Part shown: one piece after another, positions 8,227 through 61,800 of the stretch
Numbering within the stretch: position 1 is the first letter of the stretch
Layout: the number at the start of each line of letters is the position of its first letter
Assembly: GCA_037447605.1 (NCBI GenBank)
Contig: CM074815.1
Location: 1,178,001 to 1,242,000 of the forward strand
Length of the DNA: 64,000 nucleotides
Reading direction: 5' to 3'
DNA from: Zygnema circumcarinatum SAG 698-1b
Taxonomy: Eukaryota; Plantae; Zygnematophyceae
Program-made: the position numbers and the translations under genes
The notes under the pieces: generated by a model
The model's input: the letters and a program-made list of their open reading frames with translations, nothing else
Databases searched by the model: none
Told to the model about the DNA's origin: nothing

Positions 8227-9061
8227 GTGGAAAGACGGAAACGTTGGGACGCCGTGCAACGTCCTCGGCTCGCTCGCTCGCTCGCTCGCTCGTTCCAACA
8301 TTGTTACGACAGTACGGTATTGTACGGAAGTGCCATCGCCCTCAGTTTCATGCCACATGCCATGCCATGCCATGCCTGGCGAGGGTGGAAGGGAAGCAGG
8401 GGAAACGTATCCTTTGAAACTCCTCTCCACCTACCGCAGCAGCAATTGTTTCCCGCAGTGAAGTTTTTGTTGTTGTACACTGCAAGTGACAACTGCGGAA
8501 TTAAGAGTATTAAATTCCGAACAAGTCCCCCAGGCACAACCCCTACGTTTTGTTGCTGATTGACAAGCCCTGGGGTAGAAGGTCTGCCTCCTTGTGGAAA
8601 CCTGCAGATGACCATTTGCTGTGGATGCCGATTTGATGCATGAGCATTGCTGCTAGGTACATTTTGCGCCATGCTGACATAAAAACTCTATCATGATCAC
8701 GCTGCATAGCAGCTGATATCTCATTGCAGGTGACATAGAAACCATCAATTGGAAAATTATGACGAGAAAAAAATTACAAATGCAAACGGCTCATAAGTAT
8801 TCTCCCTTTTCTGTCTATATCCATTTATTGCAAGAGCAAAGGCGTGCCAGCTGTTGCAACGATTCCTTGAACATTTCATCCTCCACATACACACTCTATT
8901 ACAAAAGATTAAAAAAAATATAAAAAAAAAATTTGATTGTAATTGACTGATTGATTGCAGATTGTAAGATTCACTACAGTAACCAAAACCCAATCAAGCA
9001 ACTACAAAATTGACCTGCCGCCAAGACCCCCCATTTCGGGTTCCTCAGACCCTTCGGCTCG

Positions 9062-12000
9062 TCAAGGGGAGGCAGTGCGGCAGAGGCGAAACTTCGCAAA
9101 AACATATGGATACTGTCTCTGGAAATAATTGCGAAACGAGTCGCGAAGCATCGACGGATGCGTCACAGGAGCGGAGCCTTTCAGGGTGTAATGTTGCCCG
9201 TCGAAAAAGTCCGTTGAATATTCTTCATATTCGGGCATCGCCTGGAAGCCTGGAAAGGGCTCAAAAGTAGAGCTTGTCCATTCCCATCCTTTGTCCCGGA
9301 TGTTTAAAACTTCCTCCCCCTCATCGGAATCCACGATACGTTGATATTCCGCCTCTGTCATGATCCTCGCATCTGCAGCAGAGCAGAAAGCCATGGCTTC
9401 TGACAGACTCACATATACAGGTTGGTCTGCCACCTCCGACCAATGGTGTGAAGAGAAAGGCCCGTGAACGAAGTACTCGCCATTTACAAGAGACCAAGTG
9501 GCCGGAGCAGTGTGATTCCGAGACTGAAAATATTCCAAGTCCTCAGAATCCCACCATTGCCGTTCGCGATATCCCTGCTGCTCCACAATAAAGCGATGAA
9601 ACTCCCCAATGCTAACGGGAGCTACTGAAACAGAGAAAGGCTGCTTTACAGAGGCAGCCATAGGGGGGCCCTCATTGTCCCACTTGAATCCGCCCTCATT
9701 CAGATCCGTTCCTAAGGTGACATCTCCTCCAGGAATGACAACGTAGGACTCCATTGATTTCCCATTGGCTTTTAGAGATCGAGGTCGGATGCCATTTGAA
9801 GGAGGCCCGTTGAAGGAAGCCTTTTGGGCCTGAGCCAACATGTAGCAGAGAGTTTCCTGGTGCATACGCTCATGCTCAAGAGCCATGTTCAACACCCACA
9901 AAGATACCTGCAAATCAAAAGTATTTGTTTAGATATTTGATGCTCCCCTTCTACAATTTCCAGAAAGGGGTTGTTTGGCATACATTTGCAAAAGAGGACA
10001 TTTCGCAATGGTACATTTCACTTCGAACTTATGATGTTCCTAAAACAGCAGCAGCAAACACTAATTCCCTGTGGGAAATCTCTCTCCCTGGGTCAGGAAG
10101 TGGACAACAAATTCAAAGTTCCAACTCATTGGCATGCCCCTTTTTCCTTTCCCTCTCTTTCCTGCTCTCCTTCCTTTACTTCCCAAAGTTCTATCTCACC
10201 TTCTTTTTGGCGATGCCAGTCAGGATCTTGGAGCGAGTGACTGCCACGAAATCAAGAGTCTTTTCCTTTGAAGGCCATTCAGCCGGAGCATCAGGATGAC
10301 TATGGCACTTGGAAGGATCGGTAACAATAGGATCAATACCTCGGGAGAACATCATCTCCATCTCTGAAGCGTTCTCCTTCGGCAATAGCTTTAACTTTGC
10401 AAATGCTGGTAAGTGGCCCCTGTTTCACAAAAGCCACCTACAAAACTTCAGAATAAAGCGGAGAGTATTGCTCTATGCTTTATGCCACTTATTCCTTATC
10501 CTGTTTGAGAGACTGCCTCGCAGCATGATGCTGGGGTTTGTAAGAACATGAACTTTCTTCAAAACAATCACGAAACACTTACGCATAGAAGGAGTACGGG
10601 TGGCGCAATTCGATTGGCCGCAGACTCCAGTCGGGAATTTTGGAAAACAGAGCGTCGGTATCATCCCAGCAGCGGCGCATCGCCTCCTCCGCAGGCAGCA
10701 GCATCTACAAAAGAAGTGGAAGTTGCATCTCCTTAGAAAGTGGAAGCTGGATTAAGGAAAACTGAGATTCGTTGCAGATAATCAACGATTAGCTGGGCCA
10801 GCTATCAAGTTCACCCCTTGGCCTCAGATGCTCCAAAACAGCGAGGCAGTTGCTGGGGGGCTCTCCTCATTCATTCATTCACTCTCCTCTTTCATTCGCA
10901 AAAGGATTTCTCTACGATTTCCAGTACAGATGCTACTGCGGAGCGTAGCCTCACTAACCTGAATACCGTACTTCTTGCTCCGCCAGGCTGCATGTACACA
11001 AAATCCAGATTTCATCGCCATGCGATTTATGTCCCCCACCGTAAACTTACGTGAAACTTCCATAAGGATGCGCTCCCCGGGACTGCAGAGACACACATAA
11101 TGTGAACATTGGCCTTAGCACACAATACCACTCGAACACGTTTTCAAGGAGACACATGCAATGTTTGGCGAAACCACTCGTAAACGAGCGGGGTAGAGGG
11201 CAATGAACCGCATCACTACAGCTACCTCGAAATGACAATCTTGATTACAAGACCTTCTGAACCTGAAAGAAAGATGAACTTACCGAATACAGATGTTTTC
11301 TTGGATCAAGTTCAGGCCATCCGGCAGACGGACCCACATCTCCACTTGCCGAAGCTCAGCATTGACTTCCACCTCATATATCCACCTCGCCTCCTCTTCA
11401 GAGGAAATCTCATATCCGATAGTCCTTAGAGCATTCCGGACACCATTCTTTATGAAGGCTTCCGTAACTCCTTTCTTATCGTGATACGCCTCGTAGAGGA
11501 TTCTCCTGTCTTTCCATAAATCTGCACATCTTAAACACGTATAAGGGACTGCACTTAACACAGCAGAGACCAAAAATACGATGTATTTGATACAATTACA
11601 GACTGTACTTATTCCCTCCCGTAAAATCACTCCTCCCGGCCCCTCTGCTGCAGAAATGAAGAGGTCGAAATGGGATGAAGTGTCAAGATAGAAGGGCCTG
11701 GCTGGTCAGGAATTGAAGAGTAAGCCAGTCCTTGCATGGAAAACACGACTAGGGACTTTAGGCTACTTTGAAGAAGAGTTCAGCGAGCCACATCAGACAA
11801 AATCTCTGATTTCACAAAAAAAAAAGTTGTACCTGTGCAGAGGAGAACTTGCATGTTGGGACCCGCCGCAGCGTCAACGTCCTTAAAGAACTCGATGGCC
11901 TCCTCGTCTGTCGAAACACAATGAAAAGCAAGTTATTCTTCCAATACATCCAAACCACTAAGCAGCACAAACACAGTGCATTCACAGATGTCCGCCCACA

Positions 12001-13109
12001 AATCTCTCCTTCAAAACAAGTCCAGCAACTCCTCCTCTAAACGAGTTAAAAGTTGTGGAAGGACGCTTCGTAGAACATACGAGTAAGATTGCCCACACTG
12101 CTCCCGAGCCAAAGAATGCAGAGAACCTCAGTCGGGAACCTTCGGCGAACTTCCCGCAGGCCTTCAATGTACTCCGCCTCCACCATAGTCATCTGCGCGG
12201 TCTTCATTCCGGGGACCTGCTTCAAAAGGTTCATCCGCGCCTCCGCGAGGAAGGAGGCCGACACATCAATGCCCGCAAATCGGCAGCTGAAACCAAGACA
12301 GCGGGAGAGAAGCAGGTTAGTTGGTTGGGTGCGTACCGAAGAGCCGCAGGGCAGTATGGCATATATTTTCAAATCCGCGAAATTTACTTTCCAAGGATTC
12401 CTGAAGCCTCACTTATGTACATCACAGGCATCAAGAAGTAAGAAGTAATTTACAAATAAAGCTAGAAATTTTGGAAAGGCAAGCGGAACAAAAAGGGAAG
12501 AAAAGTAAAAGGGAAGAAAACTACAACTTCAAATCTTGGAATCTTCTTGACATCCAGCTATACAGCAAAAACTGCAGATAAAAAAGGAGACAAAAGAATA
12601 AAAAAATAGTAATAGAAACAAGCGTCACATCCTACCAAAAAAAGGAAAAAAAAAACAAATGGCCTAGTGACTTGTCAAGTTAGAAAAAAAAAAGGGGCCC
12701 TCGACCAGCGATCAAAGCAAGTCCATTGACTAACCTTACATTTCTTTCAGGAATAAAACAGTTATTAAGCAAAATAAAATCATAAATAAGAAAGAAGAGA
12801 TTCCAGCGCTGACCTTCCGTCCCGGCTGACCAACGCATTCAGAATCGCCGCCGTCTTCCTGGCCGTCCCGCAGCCGAGCTCCACCACCACCGAGCAAGCA
12901 GGCACGTGCGAGACGATGTCCTCCAAATGCTGCTTCAGCATGTTCTCCTCCGCACGAAAAGGATAGTACTCCTCCAGCTCCGTTATCTCCTCATACAGCG
13001 ACGACCCCTTGTTGTCGTACAAATAGCAGAAGGGCAGCGTCCTCGGCGTCATCTTCAGCGTGGCCGCCACATCTGCCAGCGCCTTCCACTCCTCCTCCAC
13101 CGTCGGCAT
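9062..13109 (-). CDS. EGT1: Egt1-type ergothioneine biosynthesis fusion: histidine methyltransferase (EgtD) + DinB + FGE-sulfatase sulfoxide synthase
   Basis: MTase part: LPFCYLYDNKGSSLYEEITELEEYYPFRAE, VELGCGTARKT, LWLGSSVGN, KDRRILYEAYHDKKGVTEAF, GERILMEVSRKFT. A phase-0 splice (YGIQ|MLLP) joins it in frame to RPIELRHPYSFYAGHLPAF, FSRGIDPIVTDPSKCHSHPDAPAEWP and the iron-binding HX3HXE motif EHERMHQE (9854-9874). The C-terminal FGE domain has GWEWTSSTFEPFPGF and FRNYFQRQYPYVFAKFRL. Confidence 0.9.
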
Positions 13110-13130
13110 GGCTGCCTCCTCCCTCCCTCC

Positions 13131-13200
13131 TCTCTCCTTCTCCCTCTCCCTCTCCCTCTCCCTCTCCCTCTCCCTCTCCCTCTCCCTTTCCCTCTCCCTT
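13131..13200. repeat. (CTCTCC)n / (GGAGAG)n purine tract in the EGT1 5' leader
   Basis: About 11 hexamer units immediately upstream of the EGT1 ATG. Confidence 0.85.
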
Positions 13201-14055: not shown

Positions 14056-16671
14056 CAGTGGGGGGTCCTCGTATTTACCACCCCAAGGAGTGCGCTGTAG
14101 CGTTACGGAGCTGCGTTCGACGGATCCGCGTCCGTTCAATTGTACTTGACATATGCCTCTTCCGTGTCACGGATCAACGGGATCCAGGAGCTGCCAACGG
14201 AGATTGAGAGTAGGCGGCGCCATGCGTTGGCGGCCCACGGAACAGCACACCATCCAGCAAGGCGCACCCGGGAACACCGCCAGAGGCCGCCGATTATCAT
14301 TCGTTGACCTATCCGAAGGCTCCACGTAGTCAGTCAGGCCTCTCAGTGGGCAGTTAGCCAATCAGAGGCTGTCACTACTAAGACTCAAGATCTNNNNNNN
14401 NNNAGGCAACCGACATGTAAGACCACATTACATGAACGCTACAGATCCACGACAAGATCGACTCTACCAGCAGTTCCTGAAGACACAGAATCAACAGCTG
14501 TTCGATCCCTACGCTACATCTGCTCGGAACAAGCCTTCCTTCTCCGGCGCCACTGCTCAGGACGGCCGGACAGCCCCTGTGGTGCAGCCTCTGGCCATAG
14601 CCAGCACAACCAAGCCCCTTCCCCTTTCCCCATACCCTCATGATCCGGCNNNNNNNNNNCTGCGTTGCGGACCATGGACCTGCACCTTCTGTCAGATCAC
14701 GGGACATGATGCCCGTGTGTGCATGCGGAGACTCTCGAGTGAGAAGGCCCGAAAGGGGAAAGAGGCGGCAGCAGGGAACTCACCTGCCGAGATCACTTTC
14801 ATGGATATGCTCCCGGCTTCTCCCCCACCCTCAAGAACACCGGCTCCCTTTCGCCCGCCGCCACCTCCTTCACCCGCTTACACCATCCTGCAACGACCAC
14901 CTATCCATCTGCACCCCATGGACTCCCCTTCCCTGTCGAACGTATTGGGTGCTGAGCCCGATCCTGCTACCCGATCACGCACTGCCCAGGTTGCCGCGGC
15001 ATTTCAACCGGCTTTATCAGAATCACCCATCACTTCTGAAGCTGAGGCTCAAGCCCGGATCGCCGAGATTGCGACTGCCCTTCGCAGGCTCCCTGTCAAC
15101 CGAGGCGATCCTCATTCTCATCCTCTGCCATTCCTCCCTGCCAATGTCACCGGCGCCAGTTCCTCGGGCACGGCTCCATCGGTCGCCACCCCTGTCCGAA
15201 GAACTTCAGTCATCCCTCCCTCCACGGGTCATCCCTTGGGATCCCTACCTGAGGAGGACATTGAAGATCTCAATGAAGAGGAGCCGCCAGCGGCGCAACC
15301 AGAGCCGACGCCACCGGCGACCGAAGAGATGCACGTCAACCCTCCACACCGCCCACGGGCAGCCCGTTTCTACCCCCAAGCAGCCGATCGTCGNNNNNNN
15401 NNNGCATTACCTTGTCACAGTTGATGCAACTGGTTCCAGGTGCTGCCGCCGTAGTTCGAAAGCTGGCCGACAGTGCAGAGGCCACCCTGCGGCCTCCCAC
15501 GGCTCCTATGGCATCTCCTCCGGACGTCCCCTCGCCGGCCGATATCCACCACATGGCTACGGCGCCTCCGCCGGACCCAGTCCGCTCCCCTCGCCATCCT
15601 CCTCGCCAGATTCAGATCCTCCCTCTCATCCCAACGCCCAACGTGCGGATCATTGTCAATGTATGGCTCAACGGTCATCCCAGCAAAGCCATGATCGACA
15701 CGGGGGCTATGCGCACAGTTCTGTCCAAGCCTGTGATGAAGGCGGCAGGGGTCAAGTTGGACAAGACGCTTGAGCCCATCCCCCGATATGTGGGAGTTGA
15801 AGGGAGCTTACATGAAGGATTGGGAAGCGCCCAAGTGGTCATCAGTCTTGGCGAGATGGGAGCCACAGTGAATGCAGTCATCACAGCCGCTGAACACTAT
15901 TCTATTCTGCTGGGCTCAGATTGGCTCATCGCGATGGGAGCACAAATCGATTTTGCNNNNNNNNNNCTGTCACTATGCCAAGCCACTATCCTATTCTATC
16001 CTGCCTTACACTCATCCCAATGACCGATGATAACTAGAAGCTTGGCTAAGAGACTAGCCGAGGAGAGGACAGGGGAAGAGAGCCCCCAAGGAAGGGCTCT
16101 TTGCGCATCGAGTCCAGCCGCCGGTGGGAACATCTTCAGGATCCCTACGTCTTCCGCTGCGCGTACCTCTGAATCCCCCGGATCCTGGCTCTATGCTGCA
16201 GGCAGACCCACAGAACCAACCCAACCCTTCATTAGTTTCAGCACGGACGCGCGTGTGGCCGTACAGCATCTGCAACTAGCTCAGCAGTCTTCTCTTAACC
16301 CCACATATCTTGTGCTACACACACCTGATCTCCCCGCTCGTGCCGGTAAGAGGCGCTCGCTCTTCTCCCCGTCTTTTTGACTTCGACACGATACGATACG
16401 ATACGGCCAATACGATACGAAACTCCCCGATGGTTGGATGACGACAGTATGTACGACAATATATGCGTCACGATATGTCACGGTACGATACGATTCTAAA
16501 TGATACAGTACGATACGGTACGATATGGTGAGATACGATACGTACGGTTCAACATGAACTCTAACATAATACCGCCCGTCTATTCGTAACACGAACCTTA
16601 TATATGCAAATTTAATATTTTCGCCTCATTTTGCCCGGAACCAGGGTGGAAAATATGAGGACCCCCTACTG
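14056..16671. mobile_element. Tc1/mariner-type non-autonomous TIR element (shell 1) containing an LTR retrotransposon
   Basis: TA|CAGTGGGGGGTCCTCGTATTTACCACCC at 14056 and GGGTGGAAAATATGAGGACCCCCTACTG|TA ending at 16671 (25/28 inverted match). Subterminal (ACGAT)n array at ~16385-16550. Confidence 0.75.
14096..16319 (+). mobile_element. Ty3/gypsy LTR retrotransposon, family Z copy 1 (gap-riddled)
   Basis: Starts TGTAGC (14096) and ends GCTACA (16319). Has a Gag CCHC knuckle CTFCQITGHDARVC and an aspartic protease KAMIDTGAMRTVLS...YSILLGSDWL (15412-15956). LTR parts match 40598-40890, 41267-41610 and 54205-54370. RT/INT are not visible because of N gaps. Confidence 0.75.
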
Positions 16672-18702
16672 TACAGTACTGTACAGTACAGTCTCATCCG
16701 TACAGTTCTGCTCCGGCTGATTGTTTCCGTACAGCCCCTTCCTCCCGCTGACGGGGCTTCTAATTGGCCGAGAAGGCTCCGAGGCCTCGCGTGTCGCCCT
16801 CTGATTGGACGGCCACAGTTTGGGTTCCCCGCCCTGTTTTTGGGAGCCAGTCACCGCACACGTGGCACGCTGTACACGTGGCATCCAGTACACGTGGCAC
16901 TCGACGCGAGGCATTTTATCCACAAGGTCATCCGACATGGCGAATGGGCAGGCGCCAGTTGGCATGAGTGCATGCTAGGCGGCAGAACGGGCGAGCCGTG
17001 CTGGCAGCCGTCCGGACGTTCGGGCATGGCAGAGATTCTCGCTTACGTGGCGCCATATGATTGGATATGAAAATGACTTCTCGTCCTCGCACAAGAAGTC
17101 AAAACCACACTGTCCGGCTGGCCGGCCAGAAACTGCGGAGGAACGACCTCATAAACACGAAGGGGTGACGTAGGTGGACTAGCGTAATGGCTCTCATGGT
17201 CTCGTCAGTCGCCGGCGGGCGGGCGGGTGGGACCGTACGAAATCGGGTATTGGCACAGCCCGAACGCGAACGTGCACACCCCACGCAAAGTGCCGAGAGT
17301 TGGGCGTGTTAGGCAGGCCTCGACATTTNNNNNNNNNNCTGTCACTATGCCAAGCCACTATCCTATTCTATCCTGCCTTACACTCATCCCAATGACCGAT
17401 GATAACTAGAAGCTTGGCTAAGAGACTAGCCGAGGAGAGGACAGGGGAAGAGAGCCCCCAAGGAAGGGCTCTTTGCGCATCGAGTCCAGCCGCCGGTGGG
17501 AACATCTTCAGGATCCCTACGTCTTCCGCTGCGCGTACCTCTGAATCCCCCGGATCCTGGCTCTATGCTGCAGGCAGACCCACAGAACCAACCCAACCCT
17601 TCATTAGTTTCAGCACGGACGCGCGTGTGGCCGTACAGCATCTGCAACTAGCTCAGCAGTCTTCTCTTAACCCCACATATCTTGTGCTACACACACCTGA
17701 TCTCCCCGCTCGTGCCGCCGTAAGAGGCGCTCGCTCTTCTCCCCGTCTTTTTGACTTCGACACGATACGATACGATACGGCCAATACGATACGAAACTCC
17801 CCGATGGTTGGATGACGACAGTATGTACGACAATATATGCGTCACGATATGTCACGGTACGATACGATTCTAAATGATACAGTACGATACGGTACGATAT
17901 GGTGAGATACGATACGTACGGTTCAACATGAACTCTAACATAATACCGCCCGTCTATTCGTAACACGAACCTTATATATGCAAATTTAATATTTTCGCCT
18001 CATTTTGCCCGGAACCAGGGTGGAAAATATGAGGACCCCCTACTGTACAGTACTGTACAGTACAGTCTCATCCGTACAGTTCTGCTCCGGCTGATTGTTT
18101 CCGTACAGCCCCTTCCTCCCGCTGACGGGGCTTCTAATTGGCCGAGAAGGCTCCGAGGCCTCGCGTGTCGCCCTCTGATTGGACGGCCACAGTTTGGGTT
18201 CCCCGCCCTGTTTTTGGGAGCCAGTCACCGCACACGTGGCACGCTGTACACGTGGCATCCAGTACACGTGGCACTCGACGCGAGGCATTTTATCCACAAG
18301 GTCATCCGACATGGCGAATGGGCAGGCGCCAGTTGGCATGAGTGCATGCTAGGCGGCAGAACGGGCGAGCCGTGCTGGCAGCCGTCCGGACGTTCGGGCA
18401 TGGCAGAGATTCTCGCTTACGTGGCGCCATATGATTGGATATGAAAATGACTTCTCGTCCTCGCACAAGAAGTCAAAACCACACTGTCCGGCTGGCCGGC
18501 CAGAAACTGCGGAGGAACGACCTCATAAACACGAAGGGGTGACGTAGGTGGACTAGCGTAATGGCTCTCATGGTCTCGTCAGTCGCCGGCGGGCGGGCGG
18601 GTGGGACCGTACGAAATCGGGTATTGGCACAGCCCGAACGCGAACGTGCACACCCCACGCAAAGTGCCGAGAGTTGGGCGTGTTAGGCAGGCCTCGACAT
18701 TT
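15967..18702 (+). repeat. Near-identical direct duplication of ~1.36 kb (15967-17328 and 17339-18702), probably an assembly artefact
   Basis: Both copies start at the same base after a 10-N gap; I noticed only a 2-nt indel between them. Confidence 0.85.
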
Positions 18703-47816: not shown

Positions 47817-50800
47817 CAGAAAGGAACGCTACGTAGCCACCTCTAAGGGGAAAGGGGTGTTGGATTCCGCCACGCCCTGATCCTTTAATTCTCCGGCTGG
47901 CCCGCCCGCATGCTAACTAAGCACTGGCGGTGGCCGGATACTGCTGTCGCATCATAAGGCCGCTGCTGCTGTAGGGATCCGACCGTAGTACCGACAAAGA
48001 GTATGGGCGCCATTGCTGCCGCTGGGCGCGGCGCCAAGGGAATGCGGCGAAGCATTCGTATTTGCAGCAGGCCACCTCTCGACCCATGCAGTCGAGAGGG
48101 ACACGTGGCGCTTTGCCATTGACAACCGCCTAACTTCCATGCCGGGTGAGGTTCAACGGGGAAGCGATAGGGGCGAGTGGGTGACCGCCGCCACCCAACC
48201 AACATACCGCATACGGGTTGCATCGCCCGTCCGGGCTGCTCCCCACTCGAGAGCTCTCTCTCTCTCGTTTCCTTTGTCAACTCGGCACCGCCGCACGGGC
48301 CTAAGGGCCAGGGATTTCTCGTGACATTTGCATCGTGAGCAGTGTTTTCTTTCTTTTGGGAAGGGAACCCGCCGGGTCATGGTGACCCCACTCGCCGGGC
48401 CGGAGGGGACCCGGGGCCCTCGGGGCCGCCACCTCCACCACCCGTCCCCCGGGACGAGGTGATGGAGGAGAACTCGGAGACTGCGGCCGTCCCCATGGAG
48501 GGGCCCAGTCCCGAGCCCACGGATGACCAAGGTCATCCGGTGACTGCTGCCCCTTTCCCCGCGTCACCGGAGCCGCTGGCTCCGGCAGAATCCGCCGATC
48601 CCATGATCGGGCCCACATCACTTCGGCGCCTCACATTTAGCTAGAAGAAAGATCAATTTAGCCGAGCGGATGTGGGCAGTAAAGAAGGCCGCCACCATGG
48701 CCCTCGACGCAGGTGTGGGATCTACATGGAGCTCACACGGGCCGCTTGGTGGACACGCTCCAAATGGAGTTCCGGGGCCTTTCGGACAGGCTCCGGAGGA
48801 TCGAAGAAGGTATGCCTCGAACCCCCCCTCAGGCTGTAGAGGCAGTAGATGCGGCAGGTCCTGGGGAAGGGGTTAGGCACACCACCGCGGTAGCATCGTC
48901 GCTACCGGCGTCCCAACCGGCTGCCGGAAGCAGCCGGCAGAGATCTGGACCCCCTGTTGATTCAACGGGGGGGAGTCACCCCCATGGGGGTGGCGAACCA
49001 CCCAGCAGTGGGGGACCCCCGTCGGGGGCAGCTGCTGGCGGCGGAGGAGATCCCAGTCCTCGGACTGCTCCTCCGCAACCTACTGAGGATGCCCGACGGA
49101 ATCGGGCCAAGGTGGCCCCTCTTTCCTTTTGGGGCGAACATCCTACCACGGACTGCTCGATTGAGCAGTGGTTGGGTCAAACGAAGGGCTACCTTCTGGC
49201 GACCAACTGTCCCCCCCTCCAGTGGGTAAGCTTTGCTTACCCAGCACTCAGAGGAGCCGCATACCGTGTGTATGAGGGCCTCTCTGATGAGATTGGGGAC
49301 GATTGGGATAAGTTCAGAGATGAACTTATCAAACACTTTGGGGCCTTGGATCCCGGCTTGGAGGCCCGGGATAAGTTTCAGAACATGGTCCAAACCGGCA
49401 GCGTCAAGCAGTTTCTGCGAGACCTGCGACAAGTGGTGCCTCAGATCACCACTCACAAGCCTGACAGGCTGAGTTTTTTCCACTGTGAATGGCCTGCCAC
49501 ACTCAGGAAGCAGCACTAACTCCACGGACCAAACCGCGGGGACCCCTGGCCGACTCGAAGCCAGACTTTGATGCGTACCTATTCGGGCTTGGACACCGCC
49601 CTCAAGTAGTGATGTAGATCTTCCCCACCCCGCCAGGTCGGCGACGTGACGTGGTCGTGGAAGGCGATTCCTACCCTCGCCAAATCGCGTGAAAGAATAA
49701 GCTTTAAGCGTACCGAAGTGGCTGCCCGCCCACCCACTGCACGGCCGCAGAAGCTGACTCCAGAGGAAATGGAGAAGATGCAGCGGGAGAACAAGTGTTT
49801 CCGCTGCCGCAAGGAGGGGCACAAGGCCCGGGATTGCCCTCTCAACTCCAAGGACAAGAAGGGCAAGGGGCCGGAAAACCCCAACCCACCAGCAGTTTAG
49901 GAGTCGCTGCTGGTGGAGTAAGCAGGTTAGGGGATGGGAAGACAGTTGCCGTCAATGTGTAACAAACCCGCCTCCAGCAGGGTTCGAACTCAGGACCTCC
50001 CGGTATTCACCTAAGTGCTTTACCATTAAAAGGCAACCGCGGATGTAAGTACTAGGCCATACAACACATGTATAGCGTTTCGCTACATTCCTCCCCACCT
50101 AAACGTCCCGCTCGTCTCGAAGCATCTCAAGGGTTTTCACGAAAGGCTGTCTGCTCCTTCAACACATGGACTACTTCGGGCCCAAATTCCCCTCAGCCAC
50201 TAAGGGAAAGCAAGTGTTCCGTACTCATGCCCGTAGGAGATCACTGTGTTTTTAGGGTGGATTACAAATACCGGGCATTAGGCTACGATACCAATGTAAC
50301 AAACCAGCCTCGAGGGTTCGAACTTCGAGACACTCGGTATTCACCAAGTGCTTTACCATTAAAAGGCGGACCTTGAGGATGTATGAAATCTTAGGCATTA
50401 CAACACATGTACTTAGCGTTTACATTTACACAATGTTAAGAAACTTTGTGGCTTAGGTCCACCTGACATGCTTAACTTGTCGGGCGTAATCTTTGGGGTG
50501 CACTCCATCTCGCTGTGTCATGCGCTTCCCGGAGTATGTCCTTTTCCCTCGCCAATCGCGGGTGACTCTCTGTGTTTATGGATGTATCGGCGCGCGGGCC
50601 GCTGGCATGTTTCACCTCAATGTTATGGGGAATGATGTCTTGATGAGATGTGCCATGGATGCCTTGCTTCTCTTGCGGGATACTTCCCACATCCTTGGCC
50701 GCGATACCGGTTCCTCACACTTGGCGGCCAGACTCTTTTCCCAACGCCAATCGGGCGTTGGTGAAATACCGAGAAAAGGGCACAAGTTAGTGCGCATAAT

Positions 50801-53762
50801 GGAAGGATCCACCGCCACTCTGTTGGATCCCCTACACCTTGGTGTGGAGGACGCTCGCCCTCACCCTCGTGACATAGTGCTATCCCCGCTCCATCTTGCC
50901 CATCGCGGTAATGACCTTCACCGGGTCGCCCATCGGCCACCCCGCAGCGGATATCGCTTAGATACCGCGTGACGCTTAACTTTGTTGGGTTCTCGCGATT
51001 CACCAGAGATTTGTTGGGTCACCATGTATCCCCATTTAGAAAGTGTTACTTTCGGGGATGGACGCAAGGGCCAGATCTCTGGTAGCGTCACACTCAAGAT
51101 CAAGCTCCAATCCTACTCCGGGGCAGTGAAGTGCCTTCTGACACAACTGGCCTTTGGAACGGATGTTATTTTGGGGAGTGCTTGGTTAACCATAGTCAAA
51201 GCCCAATTGGACTTTTCCATCCCACACTGTATTCTGCACAGTGGAGATAGGCGCATCACCCTACACCCTGGCAAAACCACATCCACTGCGTTCGCGCAGG
51301 TTGATACTCCTTATCTCTGCTCGGCTATGCAGTTGGCCAAGGCAGTTAAGGAGGGTTGCACCTTGTTCATGGTGCATGTCATGGCAACCACTGAGGATGT
51401 TGATGACGAAGATCCGGAATGGCAAATCGCATCCACGAATGTGTTCTCGGCTGTTCCATCCCAGATCCAACCTCTGTTGGATGAGTTCAGGGATGTCTTC
51501 CCTGACGACCTTCCAAGAGGGTTGCCGCCATCGAGAGGGGTGGGGCACACAATCCCTCTTGAGCCTGAGCAAAAGCCGCCTTGGCGGCCGATCTATCGGT
51601 TAAGCCCGAAGGAAACCGAGGAGATGCGGAAGCAGTTGGCAACTTTACGTGACAAGGGCTGGATAGAACCCAGTCAGAGCCCCTTTGGGGCGCCCATCTT
51701 GTTCGTTGGGAAGAAAGATGGTTCGTTGAGGATGTGCATTGATTACCGCGCACTCAACAAGATCACCGTAAAGAACCGTTTTGCTTTACCACGTATTGAT
51801 GATCTGTTGATCGTCTTCACGGCCGCAGTGTTTACTTCCACCGATCTTGCTCGTGGGTACCATCGTGATCCGTGTTACTGGAGCCGATGTGCCAAAACTG
51901 TTCCTGACACCGACATTGGTCATTTCCAATATAAGGTGTTGCCCTTGATTGACTAATGCCCATGACTTTCCAGCCGCCATGAACGAGATGTTCATCGGCA
52001 TGGACGAGTTTGTTTTGGTTTACCTCGACGATATCCTTGTCTTCAGTAAGACAGAGGAGGCACATCTTGAACACGTTCGGAAAGTGTTTGAGACCCTGAG
52101 GAAACACCAATTTTATGCCAAGAGGAAGAAGTGTCACTTCATGCAACGTGAGTTGCTTTATCTTGGGCATATCTTGAATGATCAGGGCCTTCGGCCTGAT
52201 CCAGCCAAAGTTTCCGCGGTAGAAACTTGGGCGCCACCGACTGACTTGCATCAGTTGAGGTCTTTTCTGGGCTTTGCGAATTATTTTCGTAAGTTCATCC
52301 AAGGGTTTAGTAAACTGGTTACCCCCTTGACTAATTTGACACGTTCCGGTGTCCCCTTTATATGGACCCCTGAATGCCAGAATGCATTCGAAGGTGTGCG
52401 CCATGCACTTGTTACCGCACCCACTCTCCGTTTAGCGGACCCATCCAAGCCTTATGAAGTGGTTTGTGATGCCTCGGGATTCGCCTTGGGTGCCGTCTTG
52501 TTTCAGGATGGCCAACCCTTGGCGTATGAAAGTAGCAAAATGAATCCCGCTGAGCGCAACTATTCTGCAACAGAACAGGAACTGCTTGCAGTGGTCCACG
52601 CCCTGAGGACATGGCGGTGCTATTTAGAGGGGGCGAAAGCGGTCACGCTGGTCANNNNNNNNNNACGGCCAGCAGTTGGTCGTGCCCAAGGCCGGGACTG
52701 TACGGCAGCTCATTCTGGGTGAGCTACATGATCCTCCGTACCGAGGTCACATGGGAGTTGCCAAAACCCGTGAGGCACTGCTCCGAGAGTTCTGGTGGCC
52801 TGGACTCTCGAGGGATGTGAAAGCGTATGTACTCGCTTGTCCAACTTGTCAACGAAACAAACCCCGCACTGGCAGGATCCCTGGCCAGCTGCAACCCCTC
52901 ACACCTCCTTTTCGGAAATGGGATAGTGTGGGCATGGACTTGATCACAGATCTTCCTGTGACATCTCGGGGGCATGACTCCATCCTCGTCTTTGTCGATC
53001 GGCTCAGCAAGATGGTGCATTTTGCACCAACTACTAAGACCGCTGGGGCCGACGAGATTGCACGGTTGTATGTTGACAAAGTATGGAGCCAGCATGGTCT
53101 TCAGTCAGAGATTGTGTCTGACCGTGATCCACGATTCACCGGCCATTTTTGGACGGAAGTGCTCAAAATCGTGGGGACCAAGCAGGCGTTGAGTACAGCT
53201 TTCCACCCGCAAACCGATGGCCAGACGGAACGGGTGAACAGGATCCTGGAGGATTACCTCCGGCATTATGTGGGACCTACCCCGGATGGGTGGGACGAAC
53301 TGCTCCCAGTGGCTGAGTACGCCATCAATAATGCTTTCCAGGAGTCCATTGGTACCACCCCTTTCTTCCAGAACTTTGGTCAGCATCCCCTAAATCCCCT
53401 GCAACCAAGGGATCAGTCCCCTGATCCGNNNNNNNNNNCGCGTCGCGGCGCGCGCCGCGGAATGCGGCGAGCATTCGTACGTTGTACACCTCTGACCCAT
53501 GCAGGTCAGAGAGGGACACGTGGCAGTTTGCCATTGGACAGCCCTGCTTCCAATCCTCCATGCTGGTAGGAGGTTCAACGGGGGAAGCGTATAGGGGCGA
53601 GGGTGACTGTCGTCACCCAACCAACATACCGGCATACGGTTGCACGCCCGTCCGGGGCTGCTCCCCACTCTGGAGCGCTCTCTCTCTCTCTCTCGCTCTC
53701 TTTGCTGAACTCTGAAGTGTAATTCCGCGCACGGCTGAAGGGGCTAGATTTCAGTCGTGACA
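47817..53762 (+). mobile_element. Nested Ty3/gypsy LTR retrotransposon, family W
   Basis: LTRs ~47817-48326 and 53439(gap)-53762, both ending CGTGACA, with putative TSD AGCGC. Gag 48713-49900 has CFRCRKEGHKARDC; PR from ~50905; RT LRMCIDYRALN and VYLDDILVFS; RNaseH VVCDASGFALGAVL and ELLAVVHAL; INT ELHDPPYRGHMG...CPTCQ and SDRDPRF...HPQTDGQTER. Confidence 0.85.
49958..50430 (-). mobile_element. Complete TRIM (473 bp) with tRNA-like LTRs
   Basis: LTRs 50295-50430 and 49958-50087 (TG...CA), PBS TGGTATCGTAGCC (rc 50281-50293), PPT TGGGGAGGAA (rc 50088-50097), 5-bp TSD CAATG (49953-49957 / 50431-50435). Confidence 0.85.
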
Positions 53763-55488
53763 AGCGCTCTGCTCCCCCCGACCGCCAACCCCTCGAGATG
53801 GGTGAGATCCCCATACGAGGCGTCGCCGAAGATTGGAACATTGACACCTTTTCTATCCCCCAGCTCGGCACCCCCTACATTCGAGTCTTCCTAGCCGTGG
53901 ACAGATACACCAAGTGGGTGGAAGTTCATACGACAGAATCTAAGCATTCCATCCACTCTGCTCGCCTCCTGACGGCCATCATTCACCGCCACTCTCTACC
54001 CTACTCTGTCCACTCTGACAATGGCACCGAATACAAGGGGGCATTTGCCAAGCTCATGCAGGACTTCCGCATCATTCACCACACCTCTAGCCCCTACTCC
54101 CCCTGGCAGAATGGGCTTGCAGAACGTACCATTCAGACGGTCAAGGATGCGTGCGTCCGCGGCTGCGCGGAGCTGCAGGCGGACTGGCGCGAGGNNNNNN
54201 NNNNCCGCTGCGCGTACCTCTGAATCCCCTGGATCCTGGCTCTATGCTGCAGGCAGACCCACAGCACCACCCCAACCCTACGTCAGTTTCAGCACGGACG
54301 CTTGGGTGGCCGTACAGCATCTGCGACTAGCTCAGCAATCTCCTTTTAACCCCACTTATCTTGTGCTACAGGCTTCAGCAAAACTCACCGAATCTTCCCG
54401 CTCGTGCCGCCGTAAGAGGAGCTCGCTCGTCTTTCCTCTTTTTTTGATTCCGACACGGCACGGCACGGTACGATACGGTACGATATGGTACGGAACGATA
54501 CGTACGGTCCAACATGAACTCTAACACGAACTCTAACAATACCGCCCGTCTACTGGTAACACGAACCTTCTATTTGCAAAAATCAATATTTTCGCCTCAT
54601 ATTTGGCAAAACCATGGCGAAAATATGAGGACTGTTGACTGTACAGTACAGTACTGTACTGTACATTACTGTACGATAACTCCATGCGCCAATAATCAGT
54701 ACTAAGCTAACTCGTGATCGCGCGGCCTAACGCCGCGCGCCGTTATTATTTGTTAGAAGCTAATTCTGTGTCGGCACAGCCTATCGTCGATAGCCACGTG
54801 AAATATCCCGACTCCCCGTGTTCCCACTACGAAAACAAACAAGACCTGTACAGACTATGACCGTATCTTCTAAGGACCCCGGTCTGACGCTAAAGGACCA
54901 GCGACTACGGCCAAGGACCGTACAGTGTACTATTCCAGACTAGACCCCTATTGTACACTACAGTTGAGCCTAGGCGTATTTTGCAACTCCTAGCGTTTTT
55001 CTTTTGGCCTGAAGTCCTTTGAGACCTCGTGGCTCCCCATGCTGATTTGGTCCATTGGCCAAAACCATTGAACCATTGGACATGCGCGCATAGCCCTCCC
55101 TCGCTAGCGCTTTATCCCCTCGGACCGACACACTGCCTACTCATACCTACGCTCAGTCAGACTCAGCGTGAAGCTCCACGGCCGTGCAACTGACCGTGAT
55201 CAGGCGCTCTACGGAACTTCAAAAGGAGGCCTTGCAAACCCTAATTGACGTTCCTCCAAACTGTTGAGAGATTTTTTCGTGACTATACAAACTGCACTGC
55301 AATAGATACATTCTTCGCCTGTTGACAAATGCAGGAAGTAGTATGACTGAAAATTAAAAGCTTAAGTGTCTTCCTTAGCTAGCTGAGTTTTTCGTACGTC
55401 TGGATCACCCCCTGCGCAGCAACAGAGGAGGCGGGGCTTGACACAGTGTGAATTAAGGCCTCTTTTTGTGAGTTGGAGAGAAGAAGAA

Positions 55489-58877: not shown

Positions 58878-61800
58878 ATGGCACGAGGCTATGGGTTGAA
58901 GAGCGGAGGGGGAGGGAAGGGCGGAGGGGGAGGGAAGGTCGGAGGGGGAGGGAAGGTCGGAGGGGGAGGGAAGGGGAGGGGAGGAAGGATGGGAACCGGC
59001 AGCCATGGCGGCGGCGGCGGAGGGAAGGGAGTTGAACGCCTCCTCCGTCTCTCGAAGGCAGGGGCCATGAAAGCGCTGCTAGGAGAGCAGGGAGTGGCGA
59101 AGGCGGAGACGAGAGAGGAGGACGAGGGCTTCGCCGCCATGGATGCTGGATACGAATATGAGGAGGCGGTGCCGGAGGAGGAGGCGGGGAAAAACCGTAG
59201 GTTCGATGATGTGGATGTGTATGAATATGAGCTTCCGGAAGACTTTGAGGTGAGCTAGAGTTTCCCTCTTCCCTTTTATGAGGTCGAATGCCGAGAAGGA
59301 GGAGGAGAATATCATAGTAAGAATTGAGGCAGCATGTTTAAAAGAATAAGTTTTTGCAGCTGGGGTACTTTCGGTACCTTGAACAACTCCAGCTGTGAAA
59401 CTTGTACTTGTGCGGTGATCACTAGTTGATAGTGGCAGAGGCAAGTATAGCGCTGCTTCTGTTGGGCTGCGTGGTTAGTTTTGGTTGACGTTAGTTTTGA
59501 TTCAAAACACGTTGTACTGTGCGATGTGTAGGATGAAGAAATCGACGAGGATATGGCTTTCACAGAAGACGATAAAGGAAAGTTTGGGCGAGGAGAGGAC
59601 GAAAATTTGGAGGATGACGAAGGGGAGGATGGTAATGACGATGATATAGACTTAAATAGTATGGAAGGCAGTGATCCTGACGCGGAGGAGGAGGACGAGG
59701 AGTACGATGATGAGGAGGAAGAGGAGGAGAAGAAGGCGGGGTTGGAGGGAGATGACGTGGGGGAGGGGAGGGAGGAGGGTCCTGAAGAGGAGAGTGAGGA
59801 GGAGGAGGAGGAGGAGGAGGAGGAGGAGGAGGAGGAGGACATGGATGCGGAGGATAGGGAGGCGAGGCACCAAAAGATGATAGCAGAGGTCACTGGAAGG
59901 ACACCGACCAAAAGTGCGTCAGCGAAAACAGGCGGGCTCCATTATAACCATTTAAAGCATGGGAGTCCTTATCTGGTAGCCTTCAGCAATGCCTATTAGC
60001 TCCTGGAATGGGCGTCGCGCTCAGTTTGTTGCCTCTGTAAAGGTCCAAGGATGTTGCTTGCTTTTGAAGAAGGAAAGACGAGACCCAGCTTTATGAGAGA
60101 TGCAATGCCTGCCAGAATTCCTCAAATTCTGCAGCGATGCATGCTGGAGTTCTTGAATGCTAACATATAGCCAACACCATGATGTGTGTATGTAAGCACG
60201 GTGAGCGTGGGTTCAAGTCTTACTATGATATGTGGGGAAGGGACCATCTTCTGAAATCGTTTCATGTGTCAAGAACCTAGTGGAACCTGTCCAATTTCAT
60301 GATTTCCGGACTTTGGGTTTACTGATTTCTCTAGGCCCAATCTAAAACCAGTATAAACGGTACATGCTGTCATTTTTGGAGGTGTCCATCGGATGTCGGC
60401 CATCGGTTCCATATTTTAACCTGTTTTAATTATTATTTCAGTACCTCATAGTAGGCATAACCATTTGAGGAGCAGCCAGCATTTGGTTGGGCCTCGTCAA
60501 TGAAACGGAGTCAAGAGATGCTAGAAATACTAGTACAACTTTTAGTTCTGCTACATATTTCTTCGAACAGTTTTGGCTGGGTAAGGTTGGTCTAGCGCTC
60601 GTTCACATTCTTCACCTGATATTCTGTCTATGTCGCTTTGGAGCATGTGGAATATTGTGCCGGCAACCTGTCCTTTGTATGCATTAACGGCGTGCAGACT
60701 TATTCTACGTTTTGACATTTTGTCTTTGCCTTCGTCGTGTGCATTATTGCTCAGCTGCCCGAACCCCGCGGAGGACATCGGTGGTCTCAGAGGCATATCC
60801 TGAGTCCGAGTTCAATCTTGACCTGTCTTCATCTGCTGCTGCTGGAGGCAGTCTTAGTGTAGAGGAGCTTTTGGAATCATTGGGGGGAGACTCGCTGGGA
60901 GGTGGAGGCCTTCCTGCTTTGAGAAAGAGACTGGAGCAGCAGCAGAAGAGAGGAGGCCCTGTTGCTGCTCCCTTACCAAAGCCCATTCGAGAGCGTTTGG
61001 AACGAAAGTAAGCGGCTAAAACTCCTGCTGTGTTTCATTACAAAAAAAGCCTGCTGGATTTGTTGGGGGAGGGAGCCTTCTGGACTGTTGCGACTGAATG
61101 TTCGTTCCGTGCATTGTTGGAAAACTTATGGAGCAAGCTATTATCTCTTCCCACTTTAGTTACCTATATTCTATGCTATATTTGCAGAGCTGGGTACGAA
61201 AAGACATCAGAAGATGTCTCAAAGTGGCAACCAATTGTGAAGCGCAATCGAGAGGCATCAACACTCGTGCTAAAGCAAAAGGACCAGGTCAACAATTTAA
61301 GTACGGGTGCCATAGTCGCCAAGTTCAAACCAACAACAGACTTTGAAAAGGAAATTGACCAGCTTTTGAATGAGAACGGGGCCACACAGGAGTCAATTGA
61401 GGAAGCAGAGGCCATGGAGCTAAACAAAGTGAGTAAAACCATCAAACCTAAATCCAATCTCGCATGATTTACGAGTGATGAATGGTGCGGTTGACATGAC
61501 GGAATGAACTGAAAGGCAGTTCTCTTGGGCGGGAAATGGGCTGTTCTGTAGTTGACGGTGGAGGAGGTTCATGCAAGAAAGGAGAGGCTGGCAAGGATGC
61601 GATCCCTCCTCTTCCGTTCCGAGCTTAAGGCGAAGCGGACGAAGAAAATCAAGTCAAAGACGTTCCACCGACTGATGCTCAAATCAGAACAGCGCAAAAA
61701 GCAGAAATCAGATCCAACGGAAGAGATGGACCCCGAGGAAGTGAAAGCTGCTGCAATCAAGCAAGAGTTTAGGAGAGCGCAGGTGAGTTTATAAGGATTG

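Follow-up and report, generated by a model that had tools for sequence, protein, structure and literature searches.

Ergothioneine, an antioxidant obtained from the diet, was for decades believed to be taken up by plants but not made by them. A gene for its synthesis in the plant lineage matters for both stress biology and nutrition. EGT1 has been reported in streptophyte algae, bryophytes, lycophytes, ferns and gymnosperms (Kock et al. 2026, Plant Biol, PMC13358676), with examples in Spirogyra pratensis (Sp_v1_0036840.1), Klebsormidium nitens (kfl01195_0010) and Physcomitrium (Pp3c20_13320). In that study ergothioneine was found by HPLC-MRM/MS in axenic cultures, only in EGT1-carrying species, among them the zygnematophyte Spirogyra pratensis, Klebsormidium and Physcomitrium. 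The published link between EGT1 and ergothioneine in the green lineage is a presence/absence correlation. For the fungal enzyme (S. pombe Egt1), a two-step pathway is given in PMC4020840.

We analyzed a window of 64,000 nucleotides from Zygnema circumcarinatum SAG 698-1b (contig CM074815.1 of GCA_037447605.1), which carries an EGT1 gene. The gene family and the compound were already known in this algal class (April 2026) and the locus is one more orthologue; a search of Dataset S1 of PMC13358676 with the N-terminus of the window protein gave no match, and the species is absent there. What the locus adds is modest: an RNA-verified gene model and a case for vertical descent built on introns and phylogeny. 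A sequence-only reading of the window had supposed that land plants merely take up ergothioneine and that an ancestral gene might have been lost in them. The first supposition is overturned by the finding of EGT1 together with ergothioneine in axenic cultures (PMC13358676). The second fails as well because that study and our own search place orthologues from bryophytes to gymnosperms, so that EGT1 is missing only from angiosperms.

EGT1 is a real, expressed gene of eight exons, and it lies intact and spliced where the sequence-only reading had put it (Table 1). All seven junctions were matched to the base, with zero mismatches, by transcript contigs from four RNA runs of the same organism. One spliced transcript joins all of the exons, and the transcript depth was high in the four runs. 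At the DNA level, 99% of the sampled EGT1 words were found in six runs (five samples from three studies) under the same organism label. The transcript contigs stop at 13105 because the microsatellite repeat upstream of the start codon was skipped in the read search; this repeat is GA-rich when read on the EGT1 strand and is probably part of the 5' UTR or promoter. Among the ten longest other open reading frames in the window, Pfam matched only a retrotransposon gag and Utp14.

Table 1. Coordinates of EGT1 and adjoining features in the window (position 1 is the first nucleotide of the window).
Feature	Position	Strand	Content and support
EGT1 coding region	9062..13109	-	708-aa open frame from ATG at 13109 to stop codon ending at 9062; 8 exons; 7 GT-AG introns of 527, 173, 311, 201, 254, 163 and 292 nt; all junctions matched by transcript contigs
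Exon 1 (aa 1-99)	12814..13109	-	Start of EgtD-type methyltransferase; SAM-binding loop VELGCGTARKT; Y31, Y39, Y48; Methyltransf_33 4.8e-26; alignment to EgtD 7scf and 4uy6
Exon 2 (aa 99-168)	12081..12286	-	Methyltransferase; ends in LGSSVGN (N165); Methyltransf_33 1.5e-07 and TIGR03438
Exon 3 (aa 168-193)	11833..11907	-	Methyltransferase; 75 nt; gene model and transcript junctions
Exon 4 (aa 193-272)	11284..11521	-	Methyltransferase; AYHDKKGVT (Y205, T212), EMW; Methyltransf_33 7.7e-09; alignment to EgtD 4pim
Exon 5 (aa 272-313)	10959..11082	-	End of methyltransferase; MEVSRKF (E280, S282); Methyltransf_33 6.9e-05
Exon 6 (aa 314-354)	10583..10704	-	Start of sulfoxide-synthase DinB-like helical domain; alignment of orthologue P0160 and helices of its model
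Exon 7 (aa 354-427)	10200..10419	-	First iron ligand H356 (codon 10415-10413); RGIDP..CHSHP..EWP segment
Exon 8 (aa 428-708 and stop)	9062..9907	-	HX3HXE and FGE-like domain; H439 (9874-9872), H443 (9862-9860), Y654 (9229-9227), Y657, N687; FGE-sulfatase 7.9e-24; alignments to EgtB, EgtB-IV, OvoA and SenA structures
3' UTR, at least 262 nt	8800..9061	-	Transcript contigs unbroken from 9062 to 8800, 8802 or 8815
(CTCCCT)13 microsatellite	13123..13199	.	Tandem Repeats Finder; just upstream of EGT1 ATG

The protein was proposed to be a fusion of methyltransferase, DinB and FGE domains, and the order of the domains bears this out. Profile searches were run exon by exon, and an orthologue 71% identical to the window protein (P0160) served as a stand-in for full-length searches and for the fold. 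Methyltransf_33 (PF10017, IPR019257) covered profile positions 3-294 in order over exons 1, 2, 4 and 5, placing a SAM-dependent histidine N-alpha-methyltransferase domain at the N-terminus, and the EgtD model TIGR03438 also matched on these exons. FGE-sulfatase (PF03781, IPR005532) was matched on exon 8, where it follows the methyltransferase within one polypeptide. The Pfam model DinB_2 gave no score on the short exons of the window and scored in some orthologues only; evidence for the DinB-like part comes from alignments with EgtB and OvoA structures and from the fold of P0160, which from its residue 319 onward aligns to OvoA 8khq and EgtB-IV 8vih, the basis on which exon 6 was assigned. The AlphaFold model of P0160 (pLDDT 94, pTM 0.92) superimposed in its N-terminal half on EgtD 4pim with a TM by target of 0.87 and an rmsd of 2.3 A, and in its C-terminal half on EgtB-IV, OvoA, EgtB-II, EgtB-I and SenA with TM values by target of 0.72-0.76.

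The residues expected for catalysis are in place. The predicted iron triad was found as a GH pair (H356) followed by HERMHQE (H439, H443 and E445). The three iron ligands, H356, H439 and H443, occur without exception in the 73 relatives and, together with the Y-x-x-Y motif, align to those of MthEgtB. In all 55 columns with at least 93% conservation among the 73 family members, the window protein carries the consensus residue, including H356, H439, H443, E445, Y654 and Y657. We take Y654 to be the catalytic tyrosine, and Y657 and N687 to be the tyrosine and asparagine that contact hercynine, following the EgtB literature; all three are conserved and align to EgtB-I, EgtB-IV and SenA, whereas OvoA differs at the last two. 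In the methyltransferase, the histidine-binding residues of M. smegmatis EgtD, which we take to be Y39, F47, Y56, N166, Y206, T213, M252, E282 and S284, were compared with the window protein. Y31, Y39 (F to Y), Y48, Y205, T212 and the methionine of EMW were placed by alignment, and N165, E280 and S282 by motif and by invariance in the family alignment A1, in which E-x-S-x-K of exon 5 is invariant or nearly so.

Our homology search recovered EGT1 orthologues in mosses, liverworts, ferns, Selaginella, conifers, Zygnematophyceae and Trebouxiophyceae. The nearest proteins were two transcripts with 71% and 65% identity, followed by Spirogloea (57%) and by liverworts and mosses (about 53%). In the phylogeny, the window protein formed a green clade with Spirogloea, Mesotaenium, liverworts, mosses, ferns, conifers and trebouxiophytes (100% support), which broadly follows the species tree and in which the window protein stands among the zygnematophyte orthologues. 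In the synthase-domain phylogeny the green clade (29 rows) and the fungi (13 rows) were separate, each with 100% support. All five introns of Closterium and all four of Marchantia agree in position and phase with introns of the window gene, and Closterium has an exon of the same length as exon 3. Because intron positions are shared and the phylogeny agrees, we conclude that EGT1 was inherited vertically within the streptophytes, not transferred from fungi, and that it predates the divergence of land plants from Zygnematophyceae. The old horizontal transfer that had been suggested thus finds no support. Neither a single origin of all eukaryotic fusions nor a sister relationship of the green and fungal clades was rejected (AU p 0.43). 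In Symbiochloris, the orthologue has at least ten introns as located by tblastn, at approximate positions that gave no reliable match to the introns of the window gene. The homology search around the neighboring clades returned mostly metagenomic entries named 'EgtB'.

Taken together, we suggest that this EGT1 is very probably the algal orthologue of plant EGT1, a single polypeptide that would carry ergothioneine synthesis through its first two stages. This agrees with the earlier proposal that the alga has a bifunctional enzyme of Egt1 architecture, which most likely starts ergothioneine synthesis, as its intact residues and green-clade orthology indicate. The chemistry assigned to it draws on homology and on the published LC-MS of orthologue-carrying species (PMC13358676), to whose EGT1 the window gene is orthologous on the evidence of the fully supported clade and of intron sharing. 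The polypeptide looks cytosolic. Its N-terminal EgtD-type domain (aa ~12-310) would convert histidine to hercynine by SAM-dependent trimethylation of the alpha-amino group. In the C-terminal EgtB-type domain (aa ~316-708), the DinB-like helices would hold Fe(II) through H356, H439 and H443 and pack against the FGE-like part that bears Y654. With O2, this domain would then couple C2 of hercynine to a thiol, cysteine being the most likely, to produce hercynyl-cysteine sulfoxide, from which a separate PLP C-S lyase, presumably encoded elsewhere, would free ergothioneine.

That no such lyase (Egt2) lies in the window had been noted before, and our results concur, although the checks were light because exons here are short. 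When the window was searched by tblastn with the PLP-lyase segment of one triple fusion (P0082) and with another triple fusion in full (P0213), only EGT1 itself was found; two class-V PLP signature motifs of EGT2 (Dataset S1 of PMC13358676) were absent from the six frames of the window, and the Pfam check was negative for a lyase. With E values of 1e-5 to 1e-23, the EGT2 matches in PMC13358676 are weak, and they are found also in non-producers such as Arabidopsis and Chlamydomonas.

Other activities have to be considered for the synthase half. It is conceivable, though we think it unlikely, that green EGT1 and the adjacent protist fusions represent a deep type of sulfoxide synthase apart from the fungal type III, in which the sulfur or selenium donor or the product spectrum may differ, for example through use of gamma-Glu-Cys or substantial formation of selenoneine. 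We give a still smaller chance to the possibility that EGT1 makes ergothioneine with gamma-glutamyl-cysteine, as the mycobacterial type I EgtB does, so that an extra amidohydrolase step would be needed. Among solved relatives of exon 8, the type I enzyme MthEgtB ranks second (88 bits), but the closest in both sequence and fold is a cysteine-bound type IV EgtB (8vii), and the type I equivalog model TIGR03440 was missed widely, with 150 bits for exon 8 and 142 for P0160 against a cut-off of 360. Use of this donor is also at odds with the fungal Egt1 enzymes, the other eukaryotic fusions, which use cysteine.

SenA works as a stand-alone enzyme and uses a selenosugar. A SenA-like synthase half, making mainly selenoneine (or using a seleno- or thio-sugar donor) and not ergothioneine, was considered and dropped, and we hold it to be very improbable. 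Its appeal lies in the NCBIfam scores of exon 8, in which SenA ranked first (191 bits, compared to 150 for EgtB and 134 for OvoA), and in the last 82 aa of EGT1, which are closest to SenA 8ryz/8k5i (50.6 bits, compared to 38.9 for EgtB-IV); in addition, selenoneine is a reported product of S. pombe Egt1 as well (PMC4020840). However, the SenA score is under half of the cut-off of 420 bits (NF041186; 176 for P0160), and the ranking carries no functional signal, since fungal Egt1 (P0288) ranks OvoA above SenA and SenA above EgtB, and bacterial relatives show every order. None of the 20 relatives that we scanned reached any equivalog cut-off; likewise, the summed exon scores of the window protein and the 194 bits of P0160 fell below the EgtD cut-off of 291 bits. 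When the whole of exon 8 was compared to the PDB, EgtB-IV came first, followed by EgtB-I, OvoA and SenA. The Egt1 layout is one in which the synthase is joined to an EgtD domain that makes hercynine, and species carrying the orthologues contain ergothioneine (PMC13358676). The SenA-like C-terminal segment of green EGT1 may in itself be a hint of substantial selenoneine formation.

Less probable still is an OvoA-like enzyme that makes 5-histidylcysteine sulfoxide for the ovothiol pathway. The N-terminal OvoA model (TIGR04344) gave 134-151 bits, and OvoA 8khq is among the top matches in fold and sequence, but the cut-off of 400 bits was missed, and at the positions of Y657 and N687, where EGT1 resembles the hercynine binders, OvoA has F and Y/A. 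The methyltransferase of OvoA is C-terminal, as the molecule name of 8khq states, with chain residues 33-324 aligning as the synthase part, and it belongs to a different family, whereas that of EGT1 is N-terminal and of the EgtD type. Finally, the idea that EGT1 derives from contamination or was recently taken up by horizontal transfer from a fungus or bacterium, and is not a resident algal gene, could appeal to the long-held view of ergothioneine synthesis as fungal and bacterial and to flanking long open reading frames with almost no Pfam matches to anchor the scaffold taxonomically, but its chance is negligible in view of the seven spliceosomal introns, four or five of them common to Marchantia or Closterium in position and phase, the nesting among Zygnematophyceae in the fully supported green clade, an identity of only 27-31% to fungi, and the presence of the gene in six DNA runs and as exact spliced contigs in four further runs, all labeled as the same organism.

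We compare EGT1, read as the orthologue of plant EGT1, with the described systems. The plant and streptophyte-algal EGT1 proteins (PMC13358676) have the same domain order, fall in the same class of about 700 aa and in the same clade, and introns are common to Marchantia and Closterium. In bacteria, EgtD (M. smegmatis 4pim) and EgtB (M. thermoresistibile 4x8b; cyanobacterial EgtB-IV 8vih/8vig) resemble the respective halves of EGT1 in fold and catalytic residues, with EgtB-IV as the best solved match to the synthase half, but they are two proteins of 24-28% identity, and type I uses gamma-Glu-Cys. SenA of Variovorax paradoxus (8k5i/8ryz) has the same fold and hercynine binding, and no other solved structure comes closer to EGT1 over the C-terminal 80 aa, although its solved chains, of 416 and 427 aa, match the synthase half alone. 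The fusions of methyltransferase and synthase in marine protists (MMETSP, clusters P0079 and P0094) have the same domain order at ~31-32% identity, and in both trees they branch as sister to the green clade (support 87-92).

The comparison with fungal Egt1 (N. crassa Egt-1 and S. pombe Egt1/Mug158; type III) shows why the label 'fungal-type' given by the sequence-only reading applies to the domain order and no further. Fungal Egt1 shares with EGT1 the EgtD-like methyltransferase followed by the DinB/FGE layout, the iron triad, the catalytic tyrosine and the RGIDP..CH.H..P..WP segment. The stretch RGIDPIVTDPSKCHSHP..EWP (aa 380-403), which had been likened to Neurospora Egt1, does align with fungal Egt1 (ERGIDPDVDDPEKCHAHSEIPDEWP), but it also aligns with non-fungal relatives. 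The fungal enzymes are 100-200 aa longer, have an identity of 27-31% to EGT1 and form their own fully supported clade, outside which the window protein falls in the synthase-domain phylogeny; under the EasF model, the fungal methyltransferase half scored 422 bits, compared to 163 bits for the green one. The green and fungal enzymes are thus alike in architecture, yet they belong to distinct deep clades.

The EGT1 gene of the window is real, intact, transcribed and spliced according to our model, because public DNA runs and exact transcript junctions both agree with it. The model was derived from the three-frame translation; its eight exons and seven GT-AG introns form an unbroken frame of 708 codons, which begins and ends exactly where the sequence-only reading had placed the start and stop. 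In an index of public runs, 99% of the sampled EGT1 words were present in six DNA runs, and further runs with the same organism label held 47-75% of them, a share that fits the expectation for spliced RNA. All seven junctions were base-exact in contigs from four RNA runs, with no mismatches and with CT..AC ends on the plus strand. A single contig of 2470 nt linked all the exons and extended through the 3' UTR to at least position 8800; intron-retaining contigs had a low depth, about 0.5-1% of that of spliced contigs. The transcript contigs end at 13105 because the microsatellite was left out of the read comparison, so that 13105 need not be the 5' end of the transcript. In intron 3, about 32 nt (11752-11783) were matched alone by contigs of three RNA runs with unrelated sequence on both sides, and thus this short piece is common to another expressed sequence.

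Features of the window and their positions
Feature	Position	Strand	Basis	Remark
EGT1 exons 1-8	13109-12814, 12286-12081, 11907-11833, 11521-11284, 11082-10959, 10704-10583, 10419-10200, 9907-9062	minus	translation and transcript contigs	
(CTCCCT)13 microsatellite	13123-13199			immediately 5' of the EGT1 ATG; GA-rich in the gene's orientation
Repeated 300-nt stretches	15957-16256, 16346-16645			each again, 100% identical, ~1372-1374 bp downstream; span 15957-18441
Ty3/gypsy-like LTR retrotransposon	48683-54220		Pfam and motifs	
Retrotrans_gag	48683-49516		Pfam	
Utp14-like (U3 snoRNP) gene exons	59532-63999	plus	Pfam	match on 63343-63999, 27.9 bits, slightly below cut-off

The repeated stretches suggest two tandem copies of a unit of about 1.37 kb. 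The same three ORFs occur in both copies, and immediately upstream the sequence has N-masked runs (about 14.4-16 kb). In the retrotransposon, motifs like those of reverse transcriptase (YLDDILVFS) and of integrase stand in ORFs that extend to about 53.6 kb. The Utp14-like gene has acidic N-terminal exons near 59.5 kb.

The sequence-only reading had proposed the order methyltransferase, DinB-like and FGE-like domain, and this is confirmed by Pfam on the exons and by the predicted fold. Methyltransf_33 (the EgtD family) was collinear on exons 1, 2, 4 and 5, and FGE-sulfatase was on exon 8; the N-terminal exons also matched the NCBIfam EgtD model TIGR03438, and exons 1 and 4 were alignable to mycobacterial EgtD. 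The fold was predicted with a 53-sequence alignment for P0160, the closest full-length orthologue, 71% identical to the window protein (pLDDT 94, pTM 0.92). Its N-terminal half resembled EgtD (TM by target 0.87, rmsd 2.3 A), and its C-terminal half gave TM by target of 0.72-0.76 against EgtB-IV, OvoA, EgtB-II, EgtB-I and SenA. A synthase-domain alignment of 73 sequences has 55 columns that at least 93% of its members conserve, and the window protein shows the consensus residue in every one, including the iron ligands H356, H439 and H443 and E445 of HX3HXE. Y654-x-x-Y657 also belongs to these columns and aligns with the tyrosines that serve catalysis and contact hercynine in M. thermoresistibile EgtB. 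In alignments to solved structures, Y657 and N687 are as in EgtB-I, EgtB-IV and SenA, which bind hercynine, whereas the histidine-binding OvoA carries F and Y/A there. The EgtD substrate residues Y31, Y39, Y48, N165, Y205, T212, the EMW methionine, E280 and S282 are retained. The roles given here to the residues of both halves are those described in the structural papers on EgtD and EgtB.

Exon 8 scored 191 bits for SenA (selenoneine synthase), 150 for EgtB and 134 for OvoA in NCBIfam, all far under the curated cut-offs, and its ranking against solved structures was EgtB-IV, EgtB type I, OvoA, SenA and EgtB type II. The SenA-leaning scores were examined as a functional sign and dismissed as uninformative. 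Of the solved structures, SenA is the one most similar to the C-terminal 82 aa, and there is thus a small chance that the enzyme might use an unusual donor chemistry.

We searched for homologues with HMMER over 1.8 billion cluster representatives and then with two word-indexed searches. Full-length orthologues were found in mosses (Ceratodon, Sphagnum), liverworts (Marchantia, Riccia, Calypogeia), ferns (Adiantum, Psilotum), a lycophyte (Selaginella), conifers (Cryptomeria, Taxus), Zygnematophyceae (Spirogloea, Mesotaenium, Closterium) and Trebouxiophyceae (Symbiochloris, Auxenochlorella, Prototheca, Micractinium, Trebouxia, Helicosporidium). Identity to the window protein is 71% and 65% in two transcripts, 57% in Spirogloea and about 53% in bryophytes. 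Two synthase-domain trees (FastTree, 192 rows; IQ-TREE LG+C20, 73 rows) both recovered one green clade with 98-100% support, with protist fusions from MMETSP transcripts as its sister group. The introns argue against contamination, which the sequence-only reading had allowed for. Exact exon structures were mapped for two orthologues, and all five introns of Closterium (window introns 1, 2, 3, 4 and 6) and all four of Marchantia (1, 3, 4 and 6) share position and phase with those of the window gene; these common introns also argue against a recent transfer. An old horizontal transfer had been suggested as well, but the window protein lies among Zygnematophyceae in both trees and the inner order of the green clade is broadly that of the species tree. 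The gene is therefore the alga's vertically inherited EGT1.

Egt1-like sequences were noted earlier in Auxenochlorella, red algae, diatoms and Physcomitrella (Ho 2015, PMC4659905). With S. pombe Egt1 and Egt2 as queries, Kock et al. (Plant Biol 2026, PMC13358676) screened Viridiplantae for proteins having this pair of InterPro domains in this order. EGT1 was present in Klebsormidium, Chara, Coleochaete, Spirogyra, bryophytes, lycophytes, ferns, gymnosperms and one trebouxiophyte, whereas Chlamydomonas and angiosperms lacked it. In axenic cultures, HPLC-MRM/MS detected ergothioneine only where EGT1 was present, and high light and heat raised it in Klebsormidium and Physcomitrium. It is thus outdated to assume that land plants are unable to synthesise ergothioneine, and the proposed loss in land plants holds for angiosperms only. 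That this alga would make its own ergothioneine is reasonable from its gene, but no longer new, because these EGT1 and metabolite data are already published. The species is absent from their data set, so the locus is one additional orthologue; the observation is confirmed and its interpretation partly supported.

The 'EGT2' assignments of the same study, for the C-S lyase of the plant pathway, are putative. Its Dataset S1 entries are weak BLAST matches (E 1e-5 to 1e-23, 20-27% identity), include NifS-like cysteine desulfurases and occur also in non-producers, among them Arabidopsis and Chlamydomonas (PMC13358676). Light checks of the 64-kb window found no PLP lyase, in line with the earlier remark that it holds no Egt2. 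Two proteins from the homology searches, P0082 (1160 aa) and P0213 (1208 aa, from a EukProt eukaryote), each combine three parts in a single chain, namely a PLP aminotransferase/PatB-like C-S lyase domain, a sulfoxide synthase and an EgtD methyltransferase, and such triple fusions could hold the entire ergothioneine pathway.

Fungal Egt1 formed a separate clade with 100% support. Constraining green, protist and fungal fusions as one clade cost 3.6 log-likelihood units and was not rejected (AU p 0.43). The metagenomic P0029 and P0088 are methyltransferase-synthase fusions of about 790 aa whose EgtD halves score 346 and 320 bits, against a bacterial equivalog cut-off of 291, and therefore an Egt1-like fusion is probably also present in bacteria; it may have arisen more than once. 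Fungal Egt1 is 27-31% identical to the window protein, which is no higher than the identity of about 32% to metagenomic fusions with an EgtD half above that bacterial cut-off.
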